NCBI GenBank assembly: GCA_965644265.1
Contig: OZ286476.1
Coordinates: forward strand, 19,964,001 to 20,028,000
Source of the DNA: Glycera tridactyla
Taxonomy: Eukaryota
Reading direction: 5' to 3'
DNA length: 64,000 nt
Shown here: one piece after another, positions 2 through 61,368 of the stretch
How positions within the stretch are numbered: position 1 is the stretch's first letter
How the letters are laid out: the number at the start of each line of letters is the position of its first letter
Translations under genes and position numbers: made by a program
Notes under the pieces: generated by a model
Databases searched by the model: none
What the model was told of the DNA's origin: nothing
What the model saw: only the letters and a program-made list of their open reading frames with translations

Positions 2-275
2 CCAGAATTCCGTGTACAGATGCGTGACATCAAGATCAATGTGGGTGAGCCCGCAACATTTGACTGTCAAATCACAGGATCGCCAGCACCTGAAGTATTC
101 TGGACAAAGAATGGCCAACGGGTGGCGGAGAGCCAGCGCTGGAAGTTCATCAACGAGGAGGATCATGTCACCTTCCTCATCTATGAAGTCCAGCAGACTG
201 ATAGCGGTCTTTACGAGTGTATCATTATGAACAAATTGGGCAGGACACATTGCTCAGCCAGGCTTACTGTATCCG
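2..275 (+). CDS. Exon 1 (5' truncated): I-set Ig domain (PEFRVQMRD...CSARLTVS)
   Basis: Ig motif FDCQITGSPAPEVFW...DSGLYEC; donor G|GTACGT at 276, phase 1. Confidence 0.92.
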
Positions 276-3192: not shown

Positions 3193-3384
3193 NNNNNNNN
3201 NNNNNNNNNNNNNNNNNNNNNNNNNNNNNNNNNNNNNNNNNNNNNNNNNNNNNNNNNNNNNNNNNNNNNNNNNNNNNNNNNNNNNNNNNNNNNNNNNNNN
3301 NNNNNNNNNNNNNNNNNNNNNNNNNNNNNNNNNNNNNNNNNNNNNNNNNNNNNNNNNNNNNNNNNNNNNNNNNNNNNNNNNNNN
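3193..3384. other. Assembly gap (192 N)
   Basis: N run. Confidence 1.
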
Positions 3385-22690: not shown

Positions 22691-23247
22691 GTAATTAACT
22701 CTATTGGGTAGATTCAGATGGCCTCTATTCCTTATCTGTTTACTCGTTTTTTGAAGATAACAGGTTGATTTCTGTTATCCCTGTCATTGCACCTTTACAG
22801 AATAAAATGGATATTTCTTTCTAATGAGCTACCCACTGAATGTTGATCTTCCCACTTGTAGAGTATTCATTAATGACCTACCATGATTTGAGGCATGCAT
22901 TATTGCTATATCCAGGATCCAGGGTTCCATCCCACTGGATACAGATTTCCAGTATTCAAATATCCCTGTGAATAGATCAATGCAAATTCAGTTGTCACTC
23001 AAATCTTTCATATTTGGTTGTAGATGACATAAGTAAATTCAACATTACTTGGCTACACATACTGGCTCAGGTGATGAGATCATGCTGAATTCAACATAAT
23101 GGAAACAGAACTCTAGCTCTAAAGAAAATATACATCCTACTGGGGGAATTATAAAGTCCCGCATTCCAATAGTAGCCTGTATTCAGACAGTTGTGATCAG
23201 AAGGGTTGTATACACAAATTTTCACTCAACGGTTTGCTTTATTCCAG

Positions 23248-25220
23248 GTGGATATGCAGGTTCATGGTGTCCAGGAAAAGCCTGAGATGCAGGCACAGGT
23301 TGTGGAACAGGTTCTTGAACCTGAACAGGTCATGACAGAAGAAGTTCGTATTAGTACTCCTGAGAACATTGAAGAACAGCACATTGTTGTTGAACTTGCA
23401 CAGGGTGTAATGGAAGAGGCGAGAGAAAGCCTTGCAATGACCCAGGAAGCAGCAATAACTGCTGAAATGGCTGAAGAGATTGCTGAGCGCATCCCAACAC
23501 CTGAGGAAATTTCTGAACAAGTTACTCCAATGGAGTTAGTTGTCACCACCTCTGAAGAGGCTAAAGAGAGCCGTGCTGTTCAACAGGAAGAAATGATGGT
23601 GGAGGAAATCACAGAGGATTTCACTGATTGTGTTCCATCCCCAGTTGAAACTTCCGAACAGCAGGTCTTTGTTGAGCTACAGCAAACAGTGTCTGAAGAA
23701 GCCAAAGAGAGTCTAGCAATGATGCAAGTAGAGCATCTTGCAGAAGAAATTGTGGAAGAAGCTGCTCGTGTTCCAACACCCGAAGATATTCAGGAACAAC
23801 AAGTTGTGGTTGAGCTCAGCCAGACAATCGCTGAACAGGCAAAAGAAAGTCGGGCTGTTCAACAAGAAGAAGTGCTCACTGAGGAGCTTGTTGAAGAATC
23901 TGCTGAGCGTATTCCAACCCCAGAAGGAGTACAAGAACAGCAAGTCATCGTTGAACTTGGCCAGACTATTGCAGAAGTTGCAAAAGAGAGTCGTGCTGTT
24001 CAGCAAGAGGAACTGATGACAGAAGAATTGGTGGAAGAATCAGCAGAACGTATTCCAACACCAGAAGGTGTTCAAGAACAGCAAGTCATTGTTGAACTTG
24101 GCCAGACTATTGCGGAAGTTGCAAAAGAGAGTCGCGCTGTGCAGCAAGAGGAACTGATGACAGAAGAATTGGTGGAAGAATCAGCAGAACGTATTCCAAC
24201 ACCAGAAGGTGTTCAAGAAGAACATGTTGTGGTGGAGCTTGGGCAAACAATTTCTGAAGCTGCAAAGGAGAGTAGGGCTGTAACACAGGAGGAATTGATG
24301 GTTGAGGAACTCACAGAGGAGTCCACTGAGCGAATTCCAACACCTGATCAAACAACCGAAGAACAGGTGGTTGTGGAAATGAGTCAGTCAGCAGTTGAAG
24401 CAGCACAAGGTGCTTTAGCTCCAACTATGGAAGAACAGCTCACTATTGATGAGGTCTATGAAATGCTTGAACGAATGCCATCACCAGTTGAAGGCAGTGA
24501 AGATCAAGTCATAGTTGAGCTTGCCAAACATGAAATGGAAGGTGCAAAGCCTTCTTTGGTTGGCATTACTGAGGACCGTGTGTCAGAGGGCTCAGTCGAG
24601 GAGAACATTGAAGAACTCACATCAGATTTCACAGAAGGTGAAGAGATCATTGTTGATCTGTCCAAGAGTGATGTTGAAGCAGCTAAGGAGAGCTACATTG
24701 GCTTTGTTGAGGAGAGCCATCCTGCTGAAGAAGAAGAGGATATATTCTTTGAGGCTCCTGAGCCAGAGCTGGAGGGTGAGGAAGTAACTGTTGATCTCAA
24801 GACAGTAGACATTCGCCAGAAGGCCGAAATGATGACATCCATGCAAGAAGATGTGGTGGAAGTCAGTTGCACAGAAGAAACTGACACTGAATACACTGAA
24901 GAAGAACCAGAAAAAGAAGAGATCAAAGTTGATCTTTCTCAAGCAGTTAGAGAAGAACCGAAGCCCAGCCATGTTGGAACTCAGGAGCGTGTTCTTACAC
25001 CTCAACAAGCAGAAGACTTTGAAGCAGAGCAAGTTACTGAAGAGGAGACCAAAGGTCAGGATGTGGTTGTCGACCTTGGAACCGTTGCGAAGGAAGCTGC
25101 AAAGGGCAGTCTGGTTGCACCATCCCAGGATATTGTTGAGGTCCAGATGACACAGGACGATATCACACCACTTGTTGAAGAGGATACACACAAAGACCAA
25201 GTCATCGTTGATCTTGAAAG
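23248..25220 (+). CDS. Exon 19: Glu/Val-rich exon with about 13 copies of a ~47-aa repeat
   Basis: Acceptor ttccag, donor AG|GTAATC; phase 0 to 2; 141-nt period visible at 23980 vs 24121. Confidence 0.88.
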
Positions 25221-25609
25221 GTAATCAAAATTCATTCAAGTTGCTCAGTGTGACGTTCATGTGTTATTAGCTTCCGATATTTGGTAAATCAATTTTGTGA
25301 CATGGAATGATATCAATCAATATCATCATATACAGTGCAAATTTTGCAGGATCAGAGGATTCCATTTCTTTCTGGAGTATGTTGAATTCACCATGGATAG
25401 AATACTGGCTTGAGCCACTTGATATCATTAGAAAGCATTTTTAAGAGATATAAATTGTTCAAAGGGAATGAATTGTTTGATCGAATTCATGTCTAGCAGC
25501 GTGATCTCAGATTGTAAATTGGTTGTTCACTCAACAGTACCTCTGCTCATTATTTGATATTTGATACATGAGTCATGACCACTTCCTCAATATACATTCA
25601 TATTTTCAG

Positions 25610-44320: not shown

Positions 44321-44507
44321 NNNNNNNNNNNNNNNNNNNNNNNNNNNNNNNNNNNNNNNNNNNNNNNNNNNNNNNNNNNNNNNNNNNNNNNNNNNNNNNN
44401 NNNNNNNNNNNNNNNNNNNNNNNNNNNNNNNNNNNNNNNNNNNNNNNNNNNNNNNNNNNNNNNNNNNNNNNNNNNNNNNNNNNNNNNNNNNNNNNNNNNN
44501 NNNNNNN
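44321..44507. other. Assembly gap (187 N)
   Basis: N run. Confidence 1.
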
Positions 44508-49422: not shown

Positions 49423-50339
49423 GTGATCTCATTGCCAGATGAGCTGAAGGGTTTTACTCTTCAATAAATATGGGTCCAGCTGTATATTTAATGGAAGCTG
49501 GTATCTGCTTTGGTCTATTTCCACTGAAGTTCACTGGAGATCATCAAGACAGATCATAAGAAATTTAATCTGGCCATGAGAGAGACAGCATTATGTATAT
49601 ACTCATTGCTTTGTATTGTATCAACACATTTTGCCCAATATATTTGCTGATTCATTTGCTTTTGCTGATGTAACTTGCTGGTATTTATCAACAATTATAT
49701 GAAATTGGTGCCAGTCTTTAATAGTATCTATTTCAGCATTTCTTCCTCACAGCAAATATGTCTCTTGGGATCTTTGATGATTTTCATCTTTTTCTTGATT
49801 TCTCAACATCTCCTCTTTTATGTTTTCCTCTGGTCATTTTATGATTTCACCTTTGTTTTCCATGATTCAGAATTGGACTATGTCCTTTTTTATTGCTAGG
49901 ACGAAAGCAACATGGAGAATTTACTCCAATTTTGATGCCATATATATTTTAGTTTTATCCTGTTTTTCCAACATCATTTCGATTCTCATATCTTGATTTT
50001 CAGATACCCTCATTTGACCTATTGAAATGTGACAGAAATAGTGATATTAGAATTATAGGTACCGGTAAATCATCAATCATTAGAACTTCTCATTCCTGGC
50101 TTCACATCGGATTGCTGTTGTGAATCAGACGCGTAATTTGGACACACCGTTTTCGTGGATCACTCTAGGGTTCCGTGATGTTATCGGAATCAGGAAATAT
50201 TTTGTACAATAATAAGTTGAACTTGAAACAAAATGTTGTTATTCCTGTCACACTTAAAGGATCCAGTTCATCCTGAGCATTATTTATCCATATCCTGTGT
50301 TGTCATTGTCATGATTTTATGTTGTTTCTTTGCACCCAG

Positions 50340-53300
50340 AACTCCCCCATACCGAACAGTTGACTGTACATGTTGGCCAGCCACAAGAAGTTGCAGAGAT
50401 CACACATGTTACAACACAAGTGGTTACAATGGAGGTCCCAGATCAACCACTGGCACCAGAAACCACACAAATTTCGACGCAGCAGGTGACTGTGGAAATG
50501 CCTGTTCAGGCACTGGCCCCCGTCACTTTGGATATTTCTGTGCCTCAGGTCGAACAAGCACATGTACATATTGTGGAAGAGCCTTCCGCTCTTTCTCCCT
50601 CGGGAAGGTCTGAGTCACCCGAAGAGTTCTATGATACTGAGTCAACTCAGATTGTAACTGTTTCCAAAGTGATGTCTGAAACCAAATCAACGGAAACCAT
50701 GCTAACAACCACAACTGAACAAGTTTCTGATCTCTCCACTGCTGAAGAACTAACAGTAGATGCCACTCAGCAGCAAACTGAACTCAACTTGGGTGTGCGG
50801 GAATCACCTTTAGTCACTAAGATATCTCCACAAGATGTTGTCTTCACAAAAGAAGAGTCGCAAACTCTTCCTGCTCTTGAAAAACCTGAGAATCCAAGAG
50901 TGCAGGATGTACCTGAGCTTGAAAGGGTTGCTCAAGTGGTACACCCTGTTGAGGCCAGGACAGAGCCTCAGAAAGAGGAGTATGTTGTGGAGGTACCAGT
51001 AGGTTTCGATGATACACGAGAAGAGTCCCCAAAGGAAGCAGCTGAAGAACTTGTGCCAACGTCCTTAGACGTTGCCATGACAGTGTTACCAGCAGAAATG
51101 AAGGAAATGTATCAGCAAACAATAGAAGTGAATCCCAAACCGCAAGCTCATGTTGTCCAACAGTTACCTATGGATGCTGGGCAGCAGCCTGAGCAAACTG
51201 TAGTGTTCACACAAGTCGATGGTACAGTACCAAGTCAACAGGTAGCTATGGTTGTTGATGTTAGCCAGCAGAAAGTTCTGACAACGACGGAAACAACGGA
51301 AGTTACTCGAGAGGTCACCACCATGGAGATGGAAGTTGAAGGCAAAAAGCTGCTACAGGAGGTGACTTTTGAAGTTCCTGTTGTAACTGAAGAACCAACT
51401 ACCATGTTTGTAGTTCAGCAGCCTGAGAAACAAGTGACTGAAACATTACTGAAAGAGCCAGTGCAACCTGTTGAGAGACGTCCAGAGGTAACAACAGAAG
51501 TCACTACCAGAGAAATCACAACCATGGAGATGGAAATTGAAGGCAAAAAACAGCTTCAAGAGGTGACTTTCGAAGTTCCTGCTGTAACTGAAGAACCAGC
51601 AACCATGTTTGTAGTTCAGCAGCCTGAGAAACAAGTGACTGAAACATTACCAAAAGAGCCAGTGCAACCTGTTGAGAGACGTCCAGAGGTAACAACAGAA
51701 GTCACTACCAGAGAAATCACAACCATGGAGATGGAAATTGAAGGCAAAAAACAGCTTCAAGAGGTGACTTTCGAAGTTCCTGTTGTAACTGAAGAGCCAG
51801 GGAATATGCTTGTTGTTCAGCAGCCTGAGCAACTAACAGAGGTGCAACCCATTGAAAGACACCCTGTGGTTTTGGAGCCTACAGTTGTTGAGCTTGTGCC
51901 AGCCCCTGACACAGCTATTGGCCCCATCACCCCCACAACACAGATCACTACAGCTACTACAACCATGATAATGGAAGTCGATGGCAGACAACAGCCACAA
52001 GAAGTTACATTTGAGATACCAGTAAGTGAGGAGCAGGTTGTCAGTAAAACAAAAGAAGTGACTGAAACTACATATACTCAAATGGTGACAGCCCTGGAAA
52101 ATATGATGCCTGGAGAACTACAGCAGACATTGGTGAGCCCTCCCAAAGAGGCTGAGCCAACCATGCGAACTGCACTGGAAATACCAGTGCAACAGGTGCC
52201 ATTACCAGAACAAACCATTGCAATTATTCCACTAGATGATACTACAGTGACACAGCAAAGTGCCTTGGTCGTTGATGTGACACAGGACAGACCGATAACT
52301 TTCACCAAGGAAACCGCTACCATGGTGATGGAGATAGGTGACCAGCGTCTTCCACAGGAAGTATCTATGGAGATTCCAGTTCCTACTGAGCATGTGACCA
52401 CGGTACATGTTGTGCCACAGCAAACTGAAATGCCAAAACCCCAGATGCCTATTTTGACTACAACTGAAGTAACTGAAATGCAAGTTGGGGTTTCACAGTT
52501 ACCCCAGCCAACAGTACAACCAGGGATCTCAGCCATTGCTATTACTCAAGAGCAAGTGCCTCGCGAGGTGTCTGAGGTGCATCTTGATGTCACTTCACAG
52601 CAGGTGATCCCAGAAGTTGCTTTTGAAATTCCAATGCCTGTTGGTGATGATGTTATCATGACAAGAGTTATGTCTCCTGCGGATATAAGAGAGATTGTCT
52701 CGTCGCCAGAATTATCAGATGATGCCTTCCACACTCCTGAGGAAGAGCTTCCACCGACCTCACCAACTGAAGCTGCACTCATTGCTGAAGTTACTGAACA
52801 GATATCTTCATTGATCGCGATTGAGCAAGAGAAACTGCCAGAAGGTATGGTTGTGGTTGCACCAGTCCCTGAATCTGAGCAATCCATGGAGATTGGACAA
52901 ATTGTTGTGGGTGGGCGACATATTAGCTTGCAGGCGACAGTCATGCATGAATCTCAACAGGAGATAATCCAGACAGTTAGCAAGTCAACAGAAGAGCTCA
53001 TCTCACAACCCATTGAAAAGCCAGAATCTCCTCAAACCGTTACTGACCAGCCCGAGGAAACATTGGTGGAAATCAAGCCTGTTGTGTCGGAAGTACCCAC
53101 TGAAGTTGGTGACATTGTAGTGGGTGGGAGAAGAATTAGTTTACAGGCTGTGTTAACCCCTGAAATTGTTGCAGAGATAGCCAAGGACATTCCAACACCA
53201 GAGGCACCGAAACAAGTGGTTTCAGAAAAACCATCTGAGGTCACAATGGAGATTCTTGACCTACCTGATACTCATAAGGCTGAAATAGGATCAATCAAAG

Positions 53301-56300
53301 TCAGTGGCCAGCAGGTCAGTCTACAAGCTGTCATAACACCGGAGATATCCAAACCTGATGTCACACCAGAGGAGGTTGCATTGAAACTCACTATGCCTGA
53401 GCCACTGAAACCAACTGATGAAATTCCAAAGGAAAGCAAAGAACCACGAATTAGTGAGGTTATTGTGAGTGGGAGAAGAGTAAGCTTAGTTTCTCCTGAG
53501 CCTGAGTCTGAACCATCAGAAGCTATAGTATTACCCTTGAAGCCAACAGAGCCTATAACCACAGAATTGATATTTGGGCATCGTAAATTCAGTGTGGTAG
53601 CCTACGATAATGAAAAACTCCTTGAACAAGTCAGAGACATTATCTCGAGGGAAGCATTGAAGGCAGCAGTAATGAAACCCAAGGAACAGCTACAGACTGA
53701 ACTGAATGTAGGTGGTGAAAATATCACTATATCTGCTGATAATCCAGAGGAACTCATAAAACAGATCAGGCAAACACTTGAACAAATTCCCCTTGAAATC
53801 AAGCCAGATCAAGTGACCGAAATCAAGCCACTCGAACCTGTTTCTGCCCAACTGAAGCTTGGGGCCCAAGAATTTACCTTCACAACTGAGGATATGGCTC
53901 ACATGGTTGAGCAGATGAAATCTGTGATAGAAAAAAAGAAGGTTGTAGAGAGCCCCGAAACTTTCACTGCAGAGGTTGTCGTTGGTAAGAGGAAGGCCAG
54001 TCTGAAAGCTGAGACAGCACCAGAATTGTCCAAAAAGGTACATGATTCAGTTCAGAGAATGCCTGAGCCTGAAGCCACTGAGCCAATCACAACCGAATTA
54101 TTCATTGGGCCACGTCATGTCAGTGTAGTGAGTGATGACAAGAAAAAACTTGTTGAGCAGGTTACTGTTGTACTTGAACAACAGCCAGTTGCCATGGTCA
54201 GTGAAACACCAGTGAAACCGGTCACTGTTGACATATCAGTCGGTGATGAGGTTGTCAGGATTGAGGGAAGAGATGCCCCAGAGGTGGTTATCAAGATTCC
54301 TGAAGAGATTGCCAAGTTACCCGAGCCCACAGTCAAGAACCCAATTACCACAGAAATGGTGATTAATGAGAAAACCATCGCAGTGGTATCTGAAAGTAAG
54401 GAGAAATTTGCAGAACAGATCCAAAATGTATTTGAACGAGTACCATCCTCCCCAAATAGTGAACCTGTAGCAGCTGAGGTGTGTGTCGGCACTAAGAGAG
54501 TCAGCGTGGTTGCTGCTGATTTCAAGGAGTTAGAGAGCAAGGTGAAAGAGACAATAGAGCAGTTACCACAGCCTCGTTTCCGTCAGCCAGTCTCTACTGA
54601 TTTGGTCATCAGTGGACAAGTAGTAAGTTTTGTTTCCGATAACAAGCAGACAATATTACGTGAGGTTGAAGAGTATTTCAAAAGAGAGACCACAACACGC
54701 ATAGCAGACACAAAACAGACATACTCAACTCAGATGGTTGTCAGTGGCAAGAAAATCAGTGTCATAGCTGAAGATTTGCCCACCATGACAGAGCGAGTGA
54801 AGAAGCTAACTTCCAAGAAACCTAAGCCATCAGAACCAATCACTGCTGAAGTTGTTGCCGGTGAGCAGAAGATTACTTTAGTTGCAGATGACATCCAGAA
54901 ATTGAGTGAGCAGATTGTGGAATTATCTATATCTACTGTCAAAGAAAGTGTAAGTCTGTACAAAGCTGAAGTGATTCTGGGAGATCGTAAGATTGATATA
55001 GAAGGGAAGGATTCAAAGGAACTTACAAGAAAGACACAAGATACTGTCAGGAAGTTACCTAGACCAAAGTTGAAGCAATCAATCACTACTGAGATAGATG
55101 TCGGTGATCGACATGTCACTATTATCAGTGATGATAAGGAGAAGTTAGTGGAGCAGATCCACACCATTGTTCAGCATGCCCCTGTTGCAGTTGTGACTGA
55201 AGAGAAGTTCAAACCAGTCACCGCTGAAATTGCCCTAGGTGAGAAGAAGGTCACTGTTGATGCAAAAGATGCTCCTGAAATAGTCAAAAAGGTTGGTGAT
55301 GCTGTGAAGAAGCTACCCAAACCCAAACCTGACCAATCAATCACTGCTGAAGTAGTTCTTGAAGGTAGAAGAATCAGTATTGTCGCTGATGACAAGAAGC
55401 CCTTGGTAGAGCAACTTCAAGTAGTTCTTGACAAGCAGCCGGTATCAAATCCAGTAGAGAAAGATAAGGAACCAGTCGCTGCAGAAGTCAGCATAGGTGA
55501 AATGAAAGTGAGTGTGGTGGCACAGGACATCAAACAGTTGACTGAACAGATTCGAGAAACTGTACAAGAGCTTCCAGAGCCAGAGAAGGCAGAGTCAGTC
55601 ACCACTGAACTTGTTATCAGTGGCAGGAGAGTGAGTCTGATTGCAGATAGCAAAGAGAAAGCACTGGAACAAATTCAGCATGTTGTTGAACAGACTCCTG
55701 TTGTCACAGAATCAGATTCCAAATGTTTAGCCACAGAGGTCACAATATCAAGTAAGCAAATCAGTATAGTTGCTGAAGATGCTAGTGCACTTATAGGGCA
55801 AATAGAAAAAATCTCACCAGCTCCAGTGATTGAAGCCCCAGTTGTAAGTGCAGAGGTGATTGTTGGTCCTCGGAGGATTAGTGTATCTAGTTGCAAGCCG
55901 GAGGAGTTGGTTGAGCAGATTCAGGAGGTTGTCCATGAGGCAACTTCAAATCCAGGTGAGATAACTCTGCAGGGTAATCCTGGGCCAGTGCAACCAACAC
56001 CAGTTATGGCACCGGAGAAAATTCTCCATGTAGTGAGTGAAACAGTTGAGCCAGTTCAACCTGTCAATCAGGTTTCAGCAGAAATCAAAGTGGCAGATGA
56101 GGTCAGGCATGTTGTTGCACCATCTACTAAGGAACTCGGTGAAAAAGTCAAGGCAGCAGTTGAAACATTACCAGCTCCTACCGTTGAGCAACCAATAACC
56201 ACAGAACTGGTTGTCGGACCACGACGTGTGAGTGTGATCAGTGATGATAGGGTGAAATTGGGAGAGCAAGTGAGTGTTATTCTAGAAGAGCAGCCCATGT

Positions 56301-59300
56301 CTGTGACCAGTCAAGAAGAGATTGCTCCAGCTGAGGCAGAGATCAAAGTAGGTGAACAAACAGTCAAAGTTGTTGCAAAAGATATTCCAGATCTTGTGAA
56401 AAAGGTTGATGATGAACTAAAGGTACTACCCAAGCCTTCGTCAAAATCACCTGTCATGTCAGAAGTGGTGACTCCATCTGGGAAAACTACCATCATTTCA
56501 GATGACACACCAAAATTGCTCGATCAAATGTCAAGCCTGCTTGAGACTGGAGCTGTGCCTACCACTGTTGATCAATTGTGTCAGCCAGTGGCAGGCGAAC
56601 TGAAAGTGGGAACAAAGAAAATCAGTATTGTTGCCAAAAGTTCAGAGGAGCTAGAAAAGAAGGTTGAAGAAACTTTAGAGGTATTGCCTCAGCCACGATT
56701 CAGGCAACAGGTAACTGCAGATTTGATTCTCTCTGGGAGAAGGGTTAGTGTCATTTCAAGTGACAAACAAACTGTCCTGGAAGAAGTCAAGAAAGTTCTT
56801 ACTTTCATAGAGGATGTGAACAAGGCCATTGAGCAACATCCAGCTAGGCCTTCAATAACTCCGCAACCATTGACAGCTAAGATAACGTGTGAGGGAAGTG
56901 AAGTTGACATTGTGGCAGAGACTCCCCAAACCCTGTTGCAAGAGGTGGCAAAATTGAAACCCACTTCTCCAGCCTTGTCTGTTACTGCTTCACTGGTTAT
57001 TGGTGAGAAGAAAGTTGATTTAGTGAGTGAGAACATTCCCAAGTTGGTAGATCAGATATCAGAACTAGTCAATCTGGAGGAGGTCCAGCCAGCTGAAGAG
57101 ATGCAGCAACCAGTTCATGCCACTATTACCCTAGGTGATCAGATCACTTGCTTTGATTCAAATGGTATCAGTGAGCTTGTGAAGAACATACAAGAAACAG
57201 CTAAGAATATTCCCAAACCTGAAGGAAGACAGTCTTTTTCAGCTGAGGTTGTTGTTGGTGATAGGCTCCTAGATATCATTACTGATGACAAAGACAAGCT
57301 TGGTGATCAGGTTGATAAGATTTTGAGGCAGTCCCCAATGTCACTTGTCAAAGGGAAGTCACCAGAACGTGTCACTGCAGAATTATCTGTTGGTGATAAA
57401 AAGGTCACTGTTGAAGCCAAAGATAAACCGGATCTTCTCAAGAAAGTGACAGATGCTGCTAAGAAACTCCCAAAGCCAAAACCACAACAGTCAGTCACAA
57501 CGGTTGCTGTTATTGACAACAAACAAGTGAGTATTGTGGCGAAAGACAAACCACAACTCATCGAGCAGCTACAATTTGTGATAGATCAGAAGCCAGAGAA
57601 ATCTCCTGTAGAAAGTATCCCTGATGTAGTAGCAGCTGATTTGAAAGTAGGTGACAAGGAGGTGAGTATTCTTGCAAAAGATGTAAAAGAGTTAGAACAG
57701 AAAGTTACTGAATCCATGACTAGTGTAGAACCTGGTGTAGGCCCTGTGAAGATTGATGTGATGGTCAGTGGTAGGAGGGTTAGTATTGTAAGTGATACAA
57801 AGGATGTAGTGCTTGAACAGGTCAAGAAAGTACTAGAAACAGAGCCTGTCACTGATGTACAAGAACCCACGCAACCAGTGTTGACAGAAGTCACTGTTAG
57901 TGGACGTAGAGTTAGCATTTTTGCTGAAGATACCACTACTCTGCTTGAAGAAGTGAAAACAGTTTTGACCCAGAAGAGAGATGAACCCTGTGCTCCAGCA
58001 TCTGTGCAAATGGTCATTGGGCCAAAAAAGGTGACATTGGTATCTGATGACACCCAGAGCTTGATCAGTCAGGTTCAGGAAGTCATTGAGCCTTCCAAAC
58101 CCGAAGAAGTCGCACATGCTGAGATAACAGTTGGTGATCACAAGACTAGTGTAGTTGCCAAGGATGCTAAAGATTTGGAAGTGCAGATCAAATCACAAAT
58201 CCCTGATTTGCCAGAACCGACAGAGCAACAGCCATCAATTTCTGAGATCACTGTAGGCCCAAGGCGTACGAGCATTGTCACTGATAGTAAGGAGGTTTTC
58301 AGTGAACAGGTTGAACTAGCACTCGAGGATGTTCCCAGTAAGCCACATGAAGGTCCCCAGCTGGCAAAAGCTGATATATCGGTTGGTGAAAAGAAGCTTA
58401 GTTTAGTTGCTGCTGACATCAAACAATTAGAGACTCAGATTGAAGAGATTGTTCATGAAGCTCCGGAACCCACTCAGGGAGAGGTGGTCCATGCTGAAAT
58501 TGAGATTGGTAGCAAGAAATTGAATATTTCTGCTGATAGCAAAGAAGTCTTCACGAGTAAGATGGCACATGCAGTTGAGGAGATACAGATTATGGTTCCT
58601 GACAAAGCTGAAGTTGTCCAGGCAGAAATACAGGTGAAAGATCGCAAGGTTAGTGTGGTTGCTGCCAGCATTGAGCAGCTAGGGGATCAAATCAAGGAGT
58701 TGGTTGTTCAGCTCCCAGACATCACCCCAAGCCAGCCAGTGACTGCAGACATTATGGTTGGTTCTCAAGAGATGATTATTGTATCAGACAATAGGGACGT
58801 CTTCACAAGTCAGGTTGAACACCTTGTTGAGAAGATACCAGAAACTTCAAAGACGCCACAAAGGGTTGAGGCTGATCTACTCATAGCTGATCATGAGGTG
58901 AAGGTGATAGCTGTCAATACACAGCAGCTGCAACACCAGATAAATGAAATCGTTTCAGAACTTCCAGCTCCAACTCCATCTCAGCCATTGACCACAGAGA
59001 TTACCATTGGTCCACAACAATTGAACATTGTTGCAGATAGTACACAGGTGTTCACTGATCAATTTGAGAAGGTGTTTGAACAAATACCTGCCGAGAAAAT
59101 CAAACCAATTGAAGCACAGATTTCAGTTGATGAGAAGAAAATTAGTTTGGCAGCAGATACTGTTAAGGAAATACAGGAGCTAGTGAAAGAGGAAGTTGGT
59201 AAATTACCCTCAGCCACCGTTGAAAAACCTGTTGTCACAGAGGTCACTATTGGTGAAAGACGCGTTAGTATCATTTCTACAGTCTCACAAAAAGTGGTAG

Positions 59301-60785
59301 AGCAGGTGCATACTGCGATTGAACATCTTCAGGAAGTCAAACCAGTTGAGCAGAAACAGGTGTCAACAGAGGTTGTGATTGAAGGTCGAAAGGTCAGCTT
59401 GATTGCACCAGATACCGAGACACTGATGGATGAAGTGAGTAAAGTGGTTGAGCATGTCACCAAACCTGCTGAACCAGTGATCACTGAACTAGTCATTAGT
59501 GGGCGTCGTGTAAGTCTTGTGGAAGCACAACCCATGCTAGAACAGGTTGAAGTGAAACCAATGGAGCCAAAACCAACTGAAAAAGTCACTGAACAACCAG
59601 AACCTCAGAAAAAATTGAAACGTCGTGTGAGTTTCAAGGCTGAAGCCCAAGTATTTTATCATTCTCCAGAATCAACTGAGATAGTTGCAGAGGCGGTCGA
59701 ACCTACTGATGTCACCATGCCAGCTGCACAAATGCCTGATATTGTCACAGCAGAGCTTGGAGAATTCAAATTAGGTGAAAAGCGAGTGAGCCTCACTGCT
59801 GTGGTCCTGCCAGAAGGGATGGAGGAAGTGCCAAAAGAGGTAACACTGCCAGTTGAATCAGTCACTTGTGTGACTGAAGCTAAACCTGTTGAAATTGGAC
59901 TGGGTGAAACAGCAACGATTATGGTCACTCCTTCAGGAGACATTAAGATGGAACCAGAACAGATTTTGCCCTCTGCAATTAAGCCAGATGATGAATATGC
60001 AGTTTCATATCCCAAGGAGATATCATTTGAAGAAGTGATTGAAGATATCTGGGCTGGAGCACAACCTGATGATCAGCCAGAAGACAAAAAGCAGCCAGAA
60101 TATATCACAGAAGTTGTCCAAGCACCTGCTGTGCAGGAAGTCCCAGATGAAACAGCAGTCAAACAGGAGGTCTTGGTCACTGAGAAACCTCAATCCATGC
60201 TGCCAGAGGCTGACAAACCAAAGGATGAGTATACTGTTTCTTACCCATCGGAAGTTTCATTTGGTGAAGAGATAGAGGACATTTGGGCTGGTGCTCAGCC
60301 TGATGAAAAACCAAGCATGCAACAGAAGCCTTCAGACACAATGGAAATGGTGGAACTCCCCTCAGAAGTTCTCAAACCCCATGATGTGACTATTGTGAAA
60401 GGAACTGAAGAAGGACCATTTGTAGAACTTCCCGCTACTCCATTGGCAGTTGAACCCAGTAAAGATGTAGTGGATGCATATACTTCAGAAGTAAGTGTAG
60501 AAGATGTCTCAGATGTTTTGCCTGCTGCCGAAGGAGTTGAAGTAGTAGCCGAAATTCAGATTCCTCAAGAGCATCTTCCCATGGTAGAGCAGGTGGAAAC
60601 TTTGCCAGTGATTGAAGGTACCGAGCAGAAGCCAGATGTCGTGGTGCCAGTGTTTGAAGAGAGTCTACCATCAGAAACAGCACAAGTGGAAGTGATGACG
60701 CATCCCCAGGATGTCACTCCATCGGATGTTCAGCCGACGGAGATGACGGCCGCCATCCCCCCATCCGAACAACCCTCGGAAGAAG
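50340..60785 (+). CDS. Exon 26: 10,446-nt giant exon (3,482 codons); PEVK-like region plus about 50 novel ~40-44-aa repeats
   Basis: Uninterrupted 3,510-codon ORF; acceptor cacccag after a pyrimidine tract; composition turns intron-like right after G|GTACCC at 60786 (weak donor, so the 3' boundary is less certain). Confidence 0.85.
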
Positions 60786-61368
60786 GTACCCAAACCTATT
60801 CCTTCTTTTGTTGTAAAATGTTAATTCCCCAGTTTATAATCTTTTTTTCTCATACATTTTAATCATTCAATTTTAAGATATCACTGTTAATATGATATAA
60901 TCATGAAAACTTTGATGTTAGGATAAAGGTATCACAACCGTTCTTGTGGGTTGCACGAAACTGCCTTTTGTAGCCATTTGTTTTTCTTGCATGAATTACT
61001 GAACTTCTTTTGCAGCCGCGATGCTCTGCGGCATTGATCTACATTCAACTGCATATTTGAAACTCTGCTGTCTAAAGCATGACTACTTCTTCATTCTTTG
61101 ACTCAAGAGAAAGACAAATGACAGTTAACATATCATAAAAGCGACACACTTCACCTCCTGAAAAATTAGGATATACGACTACTGACCAAGATAGCTTTGA
61201 TAGCCTATTGGCTACCATTAGATATTTAGTTTCTTCTCAAGCTCATATACATCCCAGAAATGAACTTCACAATACAGGTAGCAAGGATATGCTAACTCAG
61301 TCCCTGAGCTGAAAAGCACATGCAGTCAGGGAAGGGCACATCCAGCTAAATATGAAGTGCCAAAAAGG

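Follow-up and report, generated by a model that had tools for sequence, protein, structure and literature searches.

The 64,000-nt stretch of Glycera tridactyla DNA analysed here (the window; contig OZ286476.1, positions 19,964,001 to 20,028,000) encodes a tandem array in which an HMM delimits 47 well-formed units (u06-u52), each 41-45 aa long, and the nested repeat pattern of this array is genuine. The array appears to be part of a predicted exon in a titin-like muscle gene, and its module is uncatalogued, without known relatives in Pfam, among PDB sequences or among 1.84 billion representatives. We consider it fairly probable that the units form the core of a coding array within a giant titin-like exon, in which folded A-B modules, multiplied by nested duplications, act as an extensible spacer or spring.

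Results

On the forward strand, positions 50330-60862 of the window form a single open frame, in which 3,510 codons are open at 44% G+C according to the list of open reading frames and the translation. A giant exon of a titin-like gene was predicted within it at 50340..60785 (+; 10,446 nt or 3,482 codons, starting and ending in phase 1). Both splice sites are consensus predictions read directly from the DNA letters, with a polypyrimidine tract and CAG at the acceptor (50339/50340) and AAG|GTACCC at the donor (60785/60786). Upstream of the exon and on the same strand, seven open reading frames (1260, 7714, 10760, 13555, 21108, 27305 and 45511) matched Ig I-set domains at E 1e-19 to 1e-37, and the best PDB match of the nearest of these was the titin Ig tandem I65-I70 (3b43, E 4.5e-43). 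The exon is accordingly placed near many same-strand Ig I-set domains, the gene context of a titin-like gene. Contigs from four sequencing runs and two studies were colinear (99% or more) and free of indels and joints over 53900-59890; none of the runs carrying the stretch is recorded as RNA.

The well-formed units span 53555 to about 59611, and their core aligns gap-free across 30 residues in all 47. A sequence-only reading of the same DNA had placed the super-repeat at 53960-58330, where units are indeed found, but the array is longer than that. Degenerate, hairpin-only units begin at 52889: u01, u03, u04 and u05 (52889..53554, +) gave partial HMM matches, from profile position 4 to 17-30, with the motif E(I/V)G.I.V.G(R/Q)..SLQ, and Pro/Glu-rich spacers place them 36-71 aa apart. 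The head units u06-u08 (53555..53962, +) are well formed (HMM E 1e-10 to 1e-13) and stand out of the 8-mer register, with no in-order assignment to its position classes. These are followed by four super-repeat blocks (u09-u40, 53963-58111) of eight units each in the order A B A B A B b B, namely block I (u09-u16, 53963..54958, +, 332 aa), block II (u17-u24, 54959..56071, +, 371 aa), block III (u25-u32, 56072..57112, +, 347 aa) and block IV (u33-u40, 57113..58111, +, 333 aa). In block II, u24 is 76 aa long, additional Pro-rich sequence occupying about 55949-56071; in block III, u30 bears a 10-aa insertion (56801-56830).

Along the 8-mer, unit lengths are 41, 45, 41 and 45 aa (41 at the fourth place in block I), followed by 41 (39 in block IV), 43-53, 37-40 and 38-76 aa. 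Units in A slots are nearly all of 41 aa (range 37-41), with a C-terminal LPxPxxxxP, and B units range from 38 to 76 aa, both sizeable insertions sitting in B units. The tail (u41-u52, 58112..59611, +) consists of A/B pairs with a two-unit period only; its A units are all similar to position 4, its B units u42, u44, u46 and u48 make up a separate clade of their own, and u51 is similar to position 6. The eight units after block IV sum to 332 aa, yet their sequence is out of register. Val, Glu, Lys and Pro account for 42% of the composition, and 1889 residues contain three Tyr and no Trp.

Amino-acid autocorrelation, computed without segmentation, was strongest at 718 and 86 residues, and smaller peaks stood at 703, 371, 347 and 332. 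Among the 47 HMM units, similarity at even lags exceeded that at odd lags, and neither the value at lag 8 (z = 3.84) nor that at lag 16 (z = 4.0) was reached by any of 2000 parity-keeping shuffles, against which lags 4, 6, 10, 12 and 14 were at chance or lower. Clustering by position modulo 2, 8 and 16, which the sequence-only reading had anticipated, was borne out in a maximum-likelihood tree of the units: 3 label changes were needed for modulo 2 versus 15.9 expected, 10 for modulo 8 (u09-u40) versus 20.3 +/- 1.5, and 18 for modulo 16 versus 25.8 (0/2000 shuffles in each case), while the modulo 6 and modulo 10 controls were not below chance. As this tree was built on 41 columns and is without strongly supported forks, it does not fix the order of the duplications. 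Leave-one-out classification assigned 20 of 32 units to their own position class, 4 being expected by chance, and over u09-u40 as a whole units at the same position were more alike than units at other positions. Global alignment of the blocks at shifted registers was uninformative as a control, since overlapping windows and end gaps permitted the aligner to slide, and the unit-based lag and tree tests were used.

The finer claims of the earlier reading fared differently. The alternation of A and B types is clear in the tree but imperfect: position 6 of the 8-mer groups in the B clade, which would give each block a terminal b-B module in place of A-B. The eight-unit period holds over the four blocks and is lost in u41-u49. 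Matching B units were found where they had been indicated (u10 at 54086, u18 at 55082, u26 at 56195, u34 at 57236 and u42 at 58235); the fifth of these resembles the position-1 class, but it lies among neighbours, u41-u49, that show the two-unit period only. A 16-unit period is detectable, but it exceeds the eight-unit level only at p about 0.02 (permutation within classes) and is preferred by only 4 of the 8 classes; it contributes little beyond the eight-unit level. A period of 4 was rejected as a level of its own (lag 4 z = -0.04; its tree signal derives from the modulo-8 classes), as was an extension of the 8-mer into u41-u52, where the leave-one-out class assignment does not follow 8-mer order.

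Of the 8-mer positions, only 1, 2, 4 and 5 stand out clearly, separation being poor for 0, 3 and 7. At position 2, each block has one basic KKLPKPKP-type unit. The example in block II, u19 (55217..55339, +; AKD.P..VKKV..A.KKLPKPKP), has partners in u35 (57371-57493, 71% identity), u27 and u11, and the motif AKD.P...KKV.DA.KKLPKPKP was confirmed in both u19 and u35, as the earlier reading had it. Its other long-range match, LPQPRFRQ followed by (S/T)(T/A)DL..SG, was likewise located where u13 meets u14 (54590) and where u29 meets u30 (56711), within the pairs u13+u14 (54467..54721, +) and u29+u30 (56588-56869); u13 and u29 are 63% identical. An SGRRVS hairpin occupies position 5 in three of the four blocks.

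The array was undetected by TRF. Between blocks, NG86 dS was 2 or more, or not computable, and third-position identity was 0.33-0.40; identical residues shared the same codon at a frequency of 0.437 in register and 0.41 out of register, with 0.388 expected from codon usage. The block duplications are thus ancient, synonymous sites being saturated and retaining no memory of them. At the protein level, core identity was 0.40 in register versus 0.30 out of register, and dN was 0.47-0.60 versus 0.65-0.79; for u19/u35, dN was 0.20 with dS above 2. As in-register similarity persists despite synonymous saturation, some 8-mer positions are likely to be under constraint of their own. The contigs differ by 16 synonymous and 19 non-synonymous variants (pN/pS about 0.35), and these paralogues, together with this handful of variants, suggest that several 8-mer positions are under their own purifying selection. 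Recent gene conversion was rejected as the cause of the in-register similarity, as there is no excess identity at synonymous sites.

Each unit is predicted to fold as a beta-hairpin followed by an amphipathic helix, these elements being predicted at pLDDT 80-90. In AlphaFold2 models, the A-then-B pair scored a pTM of 0.65 and a pLDDT of 82.3, its A-to-B linker was ordered and 26 of its residues reached pLDDT 90; the B-then-A pair scored a pTM of 0.45, 5 of its residues reached pLDDT 90 and its junction fell below 50. A single example of either order was modelled, on equal, shallow, paralogue-only alignments. The earlier proposal of the A-B pair as a possible folding unit is therefore supported, by prediction only (pTM 0.65 vs 0.45), and A-then-B would be favoured over B-then-A as the folded module. 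The composition resembles that of PEVK-type disordered springs, so the modules may also be marginally stable or unfolded. Foldseek against the PDB gave no match at E 0.001 or below, and the top Z of a VIA-align fold search, 6.8, was that of a generic two-layer sandwich. The tombusvirus p19 core (1r9f, Z 6.8) and a designed two-layer alpha/beta sandwich (7dkk, Z 6.7) likewise have a four-stranded antiparallel sheet with two helices behind it; they are, however, only 12-15% identical to the predicted module, at Z in the tool's range for common arrangements.

Sequence searches for relatives were negative throughout. Pfam gave nothing but noise at E up to 1, and a profile search of PDB sequences gave nothing below E 0.4. 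A word-indexed homologue search with residues 1212-2640, covering proteins of 1930-6142 aa, returned nothing, a single-protein scan of metagenome contigs found no relative, and an exhaustive profile search of 1.84 billion (1.84e9) representative proteins found no homologue; no orthologue emerged from any of these last three. A literature search found no account of such a unit. The exhaustive search yielded 11 weak matches, all of them rejected. P0003 is a 29-aa repeat protein and P0009 an unrelated 75-aa repeat, and the other nine (P0001, P0002, P0004-P0008, P0010 and P0011) are bacterial MBG-type repeats, which match a 20-residue hairpin only. This hairpin, LTIG.KAITITADAKSK, resembles that of the B unit, but the MBG-type repeats are 75-79 aa long and without helix or linker matching the array, and the best stretch scores about 8 bits. 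Identity with the MBG domain was rejected, as about 20 residues and not the full 75-79 aa are matched and the array has no Pfam MBG match; the resemblance is treated as convergent or due to chance.

Discussion

To the observed periodicities, age, coding constraint and absence of known relatives, the following account adds an inferred fold, module boundaries and mechanical role. An A unit and the following B unit, connected by the fixed-length Pro-rich linker LPxPxxxxP, would form a two-layer alpha/beta module of about 86 residues, and variable, flexible linkers would join successive modules. The two-unit module would have given rise to the eight-unit block A B A B A B b B, whose copying, probably from 8 to 16 to 32 units, would have produced the four blocks; the tail (about six A-B pairs) would have arisen separately by two-unit duplications. 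The array would most likely serve as an extensible spacer or spring segment, in which flexible tethers connect small modules that are poor in aromatics and probably weak mechanically; special units recur along it periodically, the basic KKLPKPKP unit at position 2 and the SGRRVS hairpin at position 5.

A different explanation is that the 2/8/16 pattern is a fossil, a mere record of duplication within a largely disordered, PEVK/PEVT-type entropic spring whose positions have no role. We give this a modest chance: the composition is PEVK-like and aromatics are almost absent, the AlphaFold2 alignments were shallow, there is no structural relative beyond the generic Z of 6.8, and positions 0, 3 and 7 are not distinct. 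A disordered spring sits badly, however, with the regular hydrophobic pattern, the gap-free 30-residue core kept in 47 units and the hairpin-helix elements predicted at pLDDT 80-90; and that u19/u35 and u13/u29 are still 71% and 63% identical although synonymous sites are saturated would be difficult to account for unless those particular residues were constrained. That the array is an artefact, whether because the repeat is non-coding or wrongly assembled or because the pattern arose by chance, is scarcely credible; that none of its runs is recorded as RNA speaks for it, but the 3,510-codon open frame, the colinear contigs of two studies, the tilt of the variants towards synonymous changes and the shuffle tests (0/2000) all speak against it.

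The array might also be a ruler or template: the block, about 332 aa long, would match the axial period of the thin or thick filament and set a single special unit, for binding or regulation, in each period, in the manner of the super-repeats of nebulin and the titin A-band. Exactly eight units have been kept in four consecutive blocks although synonymous sites are saturated, residues and unit lengths are position-specific, blocks I and IV and the next eight units all measure 332-333 aa, and the position-2 basic unit occurs in every block and the position-5 hairpin in three of four. Against this, there are just four blocks, insertions stretch two of them to 371 and 347 aa, the 8-mer is given up in the tail, and block duplication by itself predicts in-register similarity. 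Moreover, four folded modules with taut 15-residue linkers would measure about 34 nm or less, short of 38-43 nm; this size is a rough estimate, not computed from coordinates, and 38-43 nm could be reached if modules unfold. The insertions in two blocks and the rough size tell mildly against a ruler, and we think one unlikely. An elaborated form, in which the block is a working periodic scaffold in thin- or thick-filament register, with a basic docking unit (KKLPKPKP) at position 2 and an RRxS phospho-switch hairpin at position 5 making up a kinase-tunable ruler or brake from a module of no catalogued family, seems to us just as doubtful. The extensible spacer built of folded modules remains our preferred reading.

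Super-repeats have been central to the case for titin and nebulin as molecular templates, and to our knowledge they have so far been known from Ig/Fn3 domains and nebulin modules only. The array presents a position-specific super-repeat architecture in a different, uncatalogued small module of an invertebrate titin-like gene. If orthologues keep the order A B A B A B b B, this would be an independent case of a fixed multi-unit period in a giant muscle protein, and the 86-residue module, the basic unit and the RRVS unit would become reagents with which, in obliquely striated or smooth invertebrate muscle, the determinants of sarcomere geometry and elasticity could be probed. Should orthologues lose the order, the array would be a clean example of ruler-like patterns arising from block duplication alone.

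In the A-band of titin, Ig and Fn3 domains are arranged in 7-domain and 11-domain super-repeats (PMC10665226). There, as in the array, counterparts in successive super-repeats are more alike than neighbouring domains; the array, however, is built not of Ig/Fn3 domains but of a predicted hairpin-helix unit, 41-45 aa long and about 86 aa as a pair, and it has four blocks only, two of them with insertions, and is not known to be linked to a filament period. Nebulin consists of simple repeats of about 35 aa in 7-module super-repeats (PMC7754682, PMC2878950) and thus shares with the array a small unit in hierarchical super-repeats. The array has eight units per block, not seven, and its units are predicted to fold in pairs as hairpin plus helix, in contrast to the continuous helix of nebulin along actin; the nebulin signature SDxxYK occurs 0 times in the open reading frame, which has no Pfam nebulin match. 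In the I-band of human titin, duplication of a tandem-Ig block has produced 10-Ig super-repeats (PMC12198301). Multi-domain block duplication yielded a higher-order period in both proteins (in the array, four copies of A B A B A B b B), but the domain type differs and the duplications of the array, with their saturated synonymous sites, are far older.

Invertebrate titins carry disordered elastic repeats, such as the PEVK of Drosophila Sallimus, the PEVT, CEEEI and BLUE repeats of C. elegans TTN-1 and the SEK repeats of crayfish I-connectin. As for PEVK/PPAK elastic repeats, the array is similar in composition alone, PEVK motifs and the 28-aa PPAK-type motif being absent and Pfam giving no match. 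With Sallimus, TTN-1 and I-connectin it has in common giant exons and tandem repeats rich in Val, Glu, Lys and Pro between Ig domains; it would differ from them in its regular hydrophobic pattern and its predicted folding.

Results

The repeat unit and its array

A unit profile, grown iteratively from a single-unit seed, matched one open frame of 3,510 codons (window 50330-60862, forward strand, as read from the ORF list and its translation) at 54 places. Forty-seven of these matches, running from 53555 to about 59611, were well formed (u06-u52 in the numbering of successive units along the frame). Their E-values ranged from 1e-3 to 1e-16, and all but two reached 1e-9 or better. A unit consists of a 30-residue core, aligned without gaps, followed by a linker. 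At 52889-53554 four partial matches (u01, u03, u04 and u05) display only the hairpin, E(I/V)G.I.V.G(R/Q)..SLQ, without the helix and with Pro/Glu-rich spacers between them; these may represent either decayed copies or forerunners of the full unit. Outside the array, a six-frame translation of the window yielded one marginal match, at its very start (3-227, forward strand). At the DNA level the array was not detected by Tandem Repeats Finder. A KRRVSF motif is located immediately after the last unit, u52 (59618-59635).

Periods of 2, 8 and 16 units

The sequence-only reading had described two alternating unit types, A and B, with super-repeats of 2, 8 and 16 units at 53960-58330. A segmentation-free autocorrelation of the amino acid sequence of this stretch displayed peaks at 718 and 86 residues, and lesser ones at 703, 371, 347 and 332. 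In the unit alignment, even lags outscored odd lags; when compared to 2000 parity-preserving shuffles, lag 8 (z = 3.84) and lag 16 (z = 4.0) were each matched by none, lag 24 reached z = 1.6, and lags 4, 6, 10, 12 and 14 were at or below chance. The best partner of a unit was found at lag 8 for nine units, at lag 16 for eight and at lag 2 for seven.

Clustering by position was also examined on a maximum-likelihood tree built from all 47 units, by counting label changes in comparison to shuffled labels. Three changes were observed modulo 2 (15.9 expected), 10 modulo 8 for u09-u40 (20.3 +/- 1.5 expected) and 18 modulo 16 (25.8 expected), with 0/2000 shuffles as low in each case; units thus do cluster modulo 2, 8 and 16. 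The control moduli 6 (19 changes, 17.5 expected) and 10 (26 changes, 22.1 expected) did not fall below chance. Leave-one-out assignment to the eight position classes was correct for 20 of 32 units, with four expected by chance, and positions 1, 2, 4 and 5 were correct in all four cases each. The lag and tree tests strongly confirm the 2- and 8-unit periods; the 16-unit period is present in both, but, with the 8-unit classes accounted for, it is weak. At this level the pairing of the first 8-unit block with the third and of the second with the fourth (I-III and II-IV) surpassed the two alternatives in four of the eight classes and by total score (p about 0.02), carried mainly by u19/u35 (71% identity), u13/u29 (63%), u10/u26 (58%) and u20/u36 (47%).

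Architecture of the blocks and of the tail

The 8-mer spans exactly four blocks: I (53963-54958), II (54959-56071), III (56072-57112) and IV (57113-58111). Inside a block the units follow one another as A B A B A B b B. The b unit, at position 6 (positions being numbered 0-7), groups with the B clade of the tree, although its slot is that of an A unit and its short proline linker is A-like. Unit lengths are specific to the position within the 8-mer: always 41 aa at positions 0 and 2, always 45 aa at position 1, 45 aa at position 3 (41 in block I), 41 aa at position 4 (39 in block IV), 43-53 aa at position 5, 37-40 aa at position 6 and 38-76 aa at position 7. Two blocks are lengthened by insertions, at 55949-56071 and 56801-56830. 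A basic KKLPKPKP-type unit appears once per 8-unit period, at position 2, and an SGRRVS hairpin at position 5 in three of the four blocks; position 5 of blocks II-IV carries an RRVS-type hairpin turn, as do several further B units.

The tail, u41-u52, displays a 2-unit period only. All A units in it are similar to position 4; the B units u42, u44, u46 and u48 form a clade of their own adjoining u12, and u51 is the only tail unit that recalls position 6. The B unit at 58235 (u42), previously listed as the fifth of the matching series, does score best in the position-1 class, but no fifth in-register block surrounds it.

Predicted fold

AlphaFold2, supplied with an alignment of 23 paralogous A-B pairs, predicted for A-B a hairpin-helix-hairpin-helix with an ordered A-to-B linker (mean pLDDT 82.3, pTM 0.65). 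An equivalent run in the B-A order gave a pTM of 0.45; few residues exceeded pLDDT 90, and the junction stayed below 50. Units in A slots are nearly constant in length, and insertions are carried by B units. Together, the two models and the length pattern support, at the level of prediction, the earlier suggestion that the A-B pair is the folding unit. A Foldseek search against the PDB returned no match at E 0.001 or below, and the top VIA-align scores (Z 6.8 for the p19 core and 6.7 for a designed sandwich) both lie in that tool's range for common arrangements. The modules may be mechanically weak, as the array contains no Trp, three Tyr and 42% V+E+K+P.

Gene setting

Consensus splice sites predict within the open frame an exon of 10,446 nt (3,482 codons, forward strand, phase 1 at both ends), with an acceptor at 50339/50340 (polypyrimidine tract and CAG) and a donor at 60785/60786 (AAG/GTACCC). 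Ig I-set domains are found in all same-strand upstream ORFs listed (1260, 7714, 10760, 13555, 21108, 27305 and 45511), and the top PDB match of the nearest one is a titin Ig tandem (3b43, E 4.5e-43). On these sequence grounds, the giant exon most probably lies within a titin-like gene.

The same exon harbors a 201-nt tandem repeat (51315-51833; 2.6 copies, 93% matches), whose encoded 67-aa units carry a hairpin-like motif (TTMEMEIEGKKQLQEVTFEVP); it is young, whereas the main array is ancient and invisible in DNA. Near the exon end are two copies of a conserved acidic motif, DEYxVSYPxExSFxEEIEDIWAGAQPD (59990-60100 and 60224-60330), spaced by ~78 residues, within which fall the sole Trp residues seen in that part. 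Elsewhere in the gene, a further long open frame (23206-25224, forward strand) contains a 141-nt tandem repeat (23767-24300; 3.8 copies, 83% matches, 47-aa units) without a Pfam match. Runs of N occupy 3193-3384 (192 bases) and 44321-44507 (187 bases).

Age and constraint

Protein identity among blocks I-IV is 36-40%, and core identity is 0.40 in register (same position, different block) as compared to 0.30 out of register, a gap that is widest at columns 8, 9, 23 and 28. In the ungapped cores dN was 0.47-0.60 in register versus 0.65-0.79 out of register (0.20 for u19/u35), dS was 2 or more or not computable, and third-position identity was 0.33-0.40. Aligned identical residues used the same codon in a fraction of 0.437 in register and 0.41 out of register, with 0.388 expected from codon usage; synonymous sites therefore retain essentially no memory of the duplications, which excludes recent gene conversion. 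We infer that the block duplications are ancient, with purifying selection of their own acting on positions 1, 2, 4 and 5 at least. Logan contigs from four runs in two studies matched 53900-59890 colinearly at 99% or more, free of indels and joints; their 35 differences comprised 16 synonymous and 19 non-synonymous changes (pN/pS about 0.35).

Search for relatives

Pfam returned only noise on the array, a PDB sequence profile search nothing below E 0.4, and a word-indexed search of a 5.8-billion-cluster collection no relative within its length band; none was found in metagenome contigs either. When 1.84 billion representatives were searched exhaustively with a profile, 11 weak matches emerged, all rejected on inspection as bacterial MBG-type repeats (about 20 hairpin residues only) or as two unrelated repeat proteins. 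The MBG-type surface repeats (matches P0001, P0002, P0004-P0008, P0010 and P0011) have in common with the B unit a 20-residue hairpin (LTIG.KAITITADAKSK), and their many copies per protein sufficed for E-values as low as 3.6e-17, which can mislead profile searches with short repeats. In the literature searched, which did not extend to the TTN-1 repeat paper, no account of such a unit was found.

Discussion

The best reading of the nested pattern is that it records a succession of duplications. An eight-unit block would have arisen from a two-unit module and been copied into four, and a separate two-unit tail would have been added, all among small predicted modules that flexible linkers join into a chain, where the titin-like protein is rich in Ig domains; selection would later have held some of the positions. 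Considering context, composition and architecture, a role of the array as a spring or spacer would be its most economical function.

The 8-mer had also been proposed to act as a ruler for a filament repeat. This is possible but unsupported: there are no more than four blocks, insertions lengthen two of them, and four folded modules of ~3 nm, each followed by a fully taut 15-residue linker, would span at most about 34 nm by a rough estimate not derived from coordinates, which is less than 38-43 nm. A periodic docking or phospho-regulated function of the 8-mer is conceivable, since each period holds a basic KKLPKPKP-type unit and three of the four blocks an SGRRVS hairpin. A super-repeat as such is of a known kind; what is new here is its construction from an uncatalogued unit.
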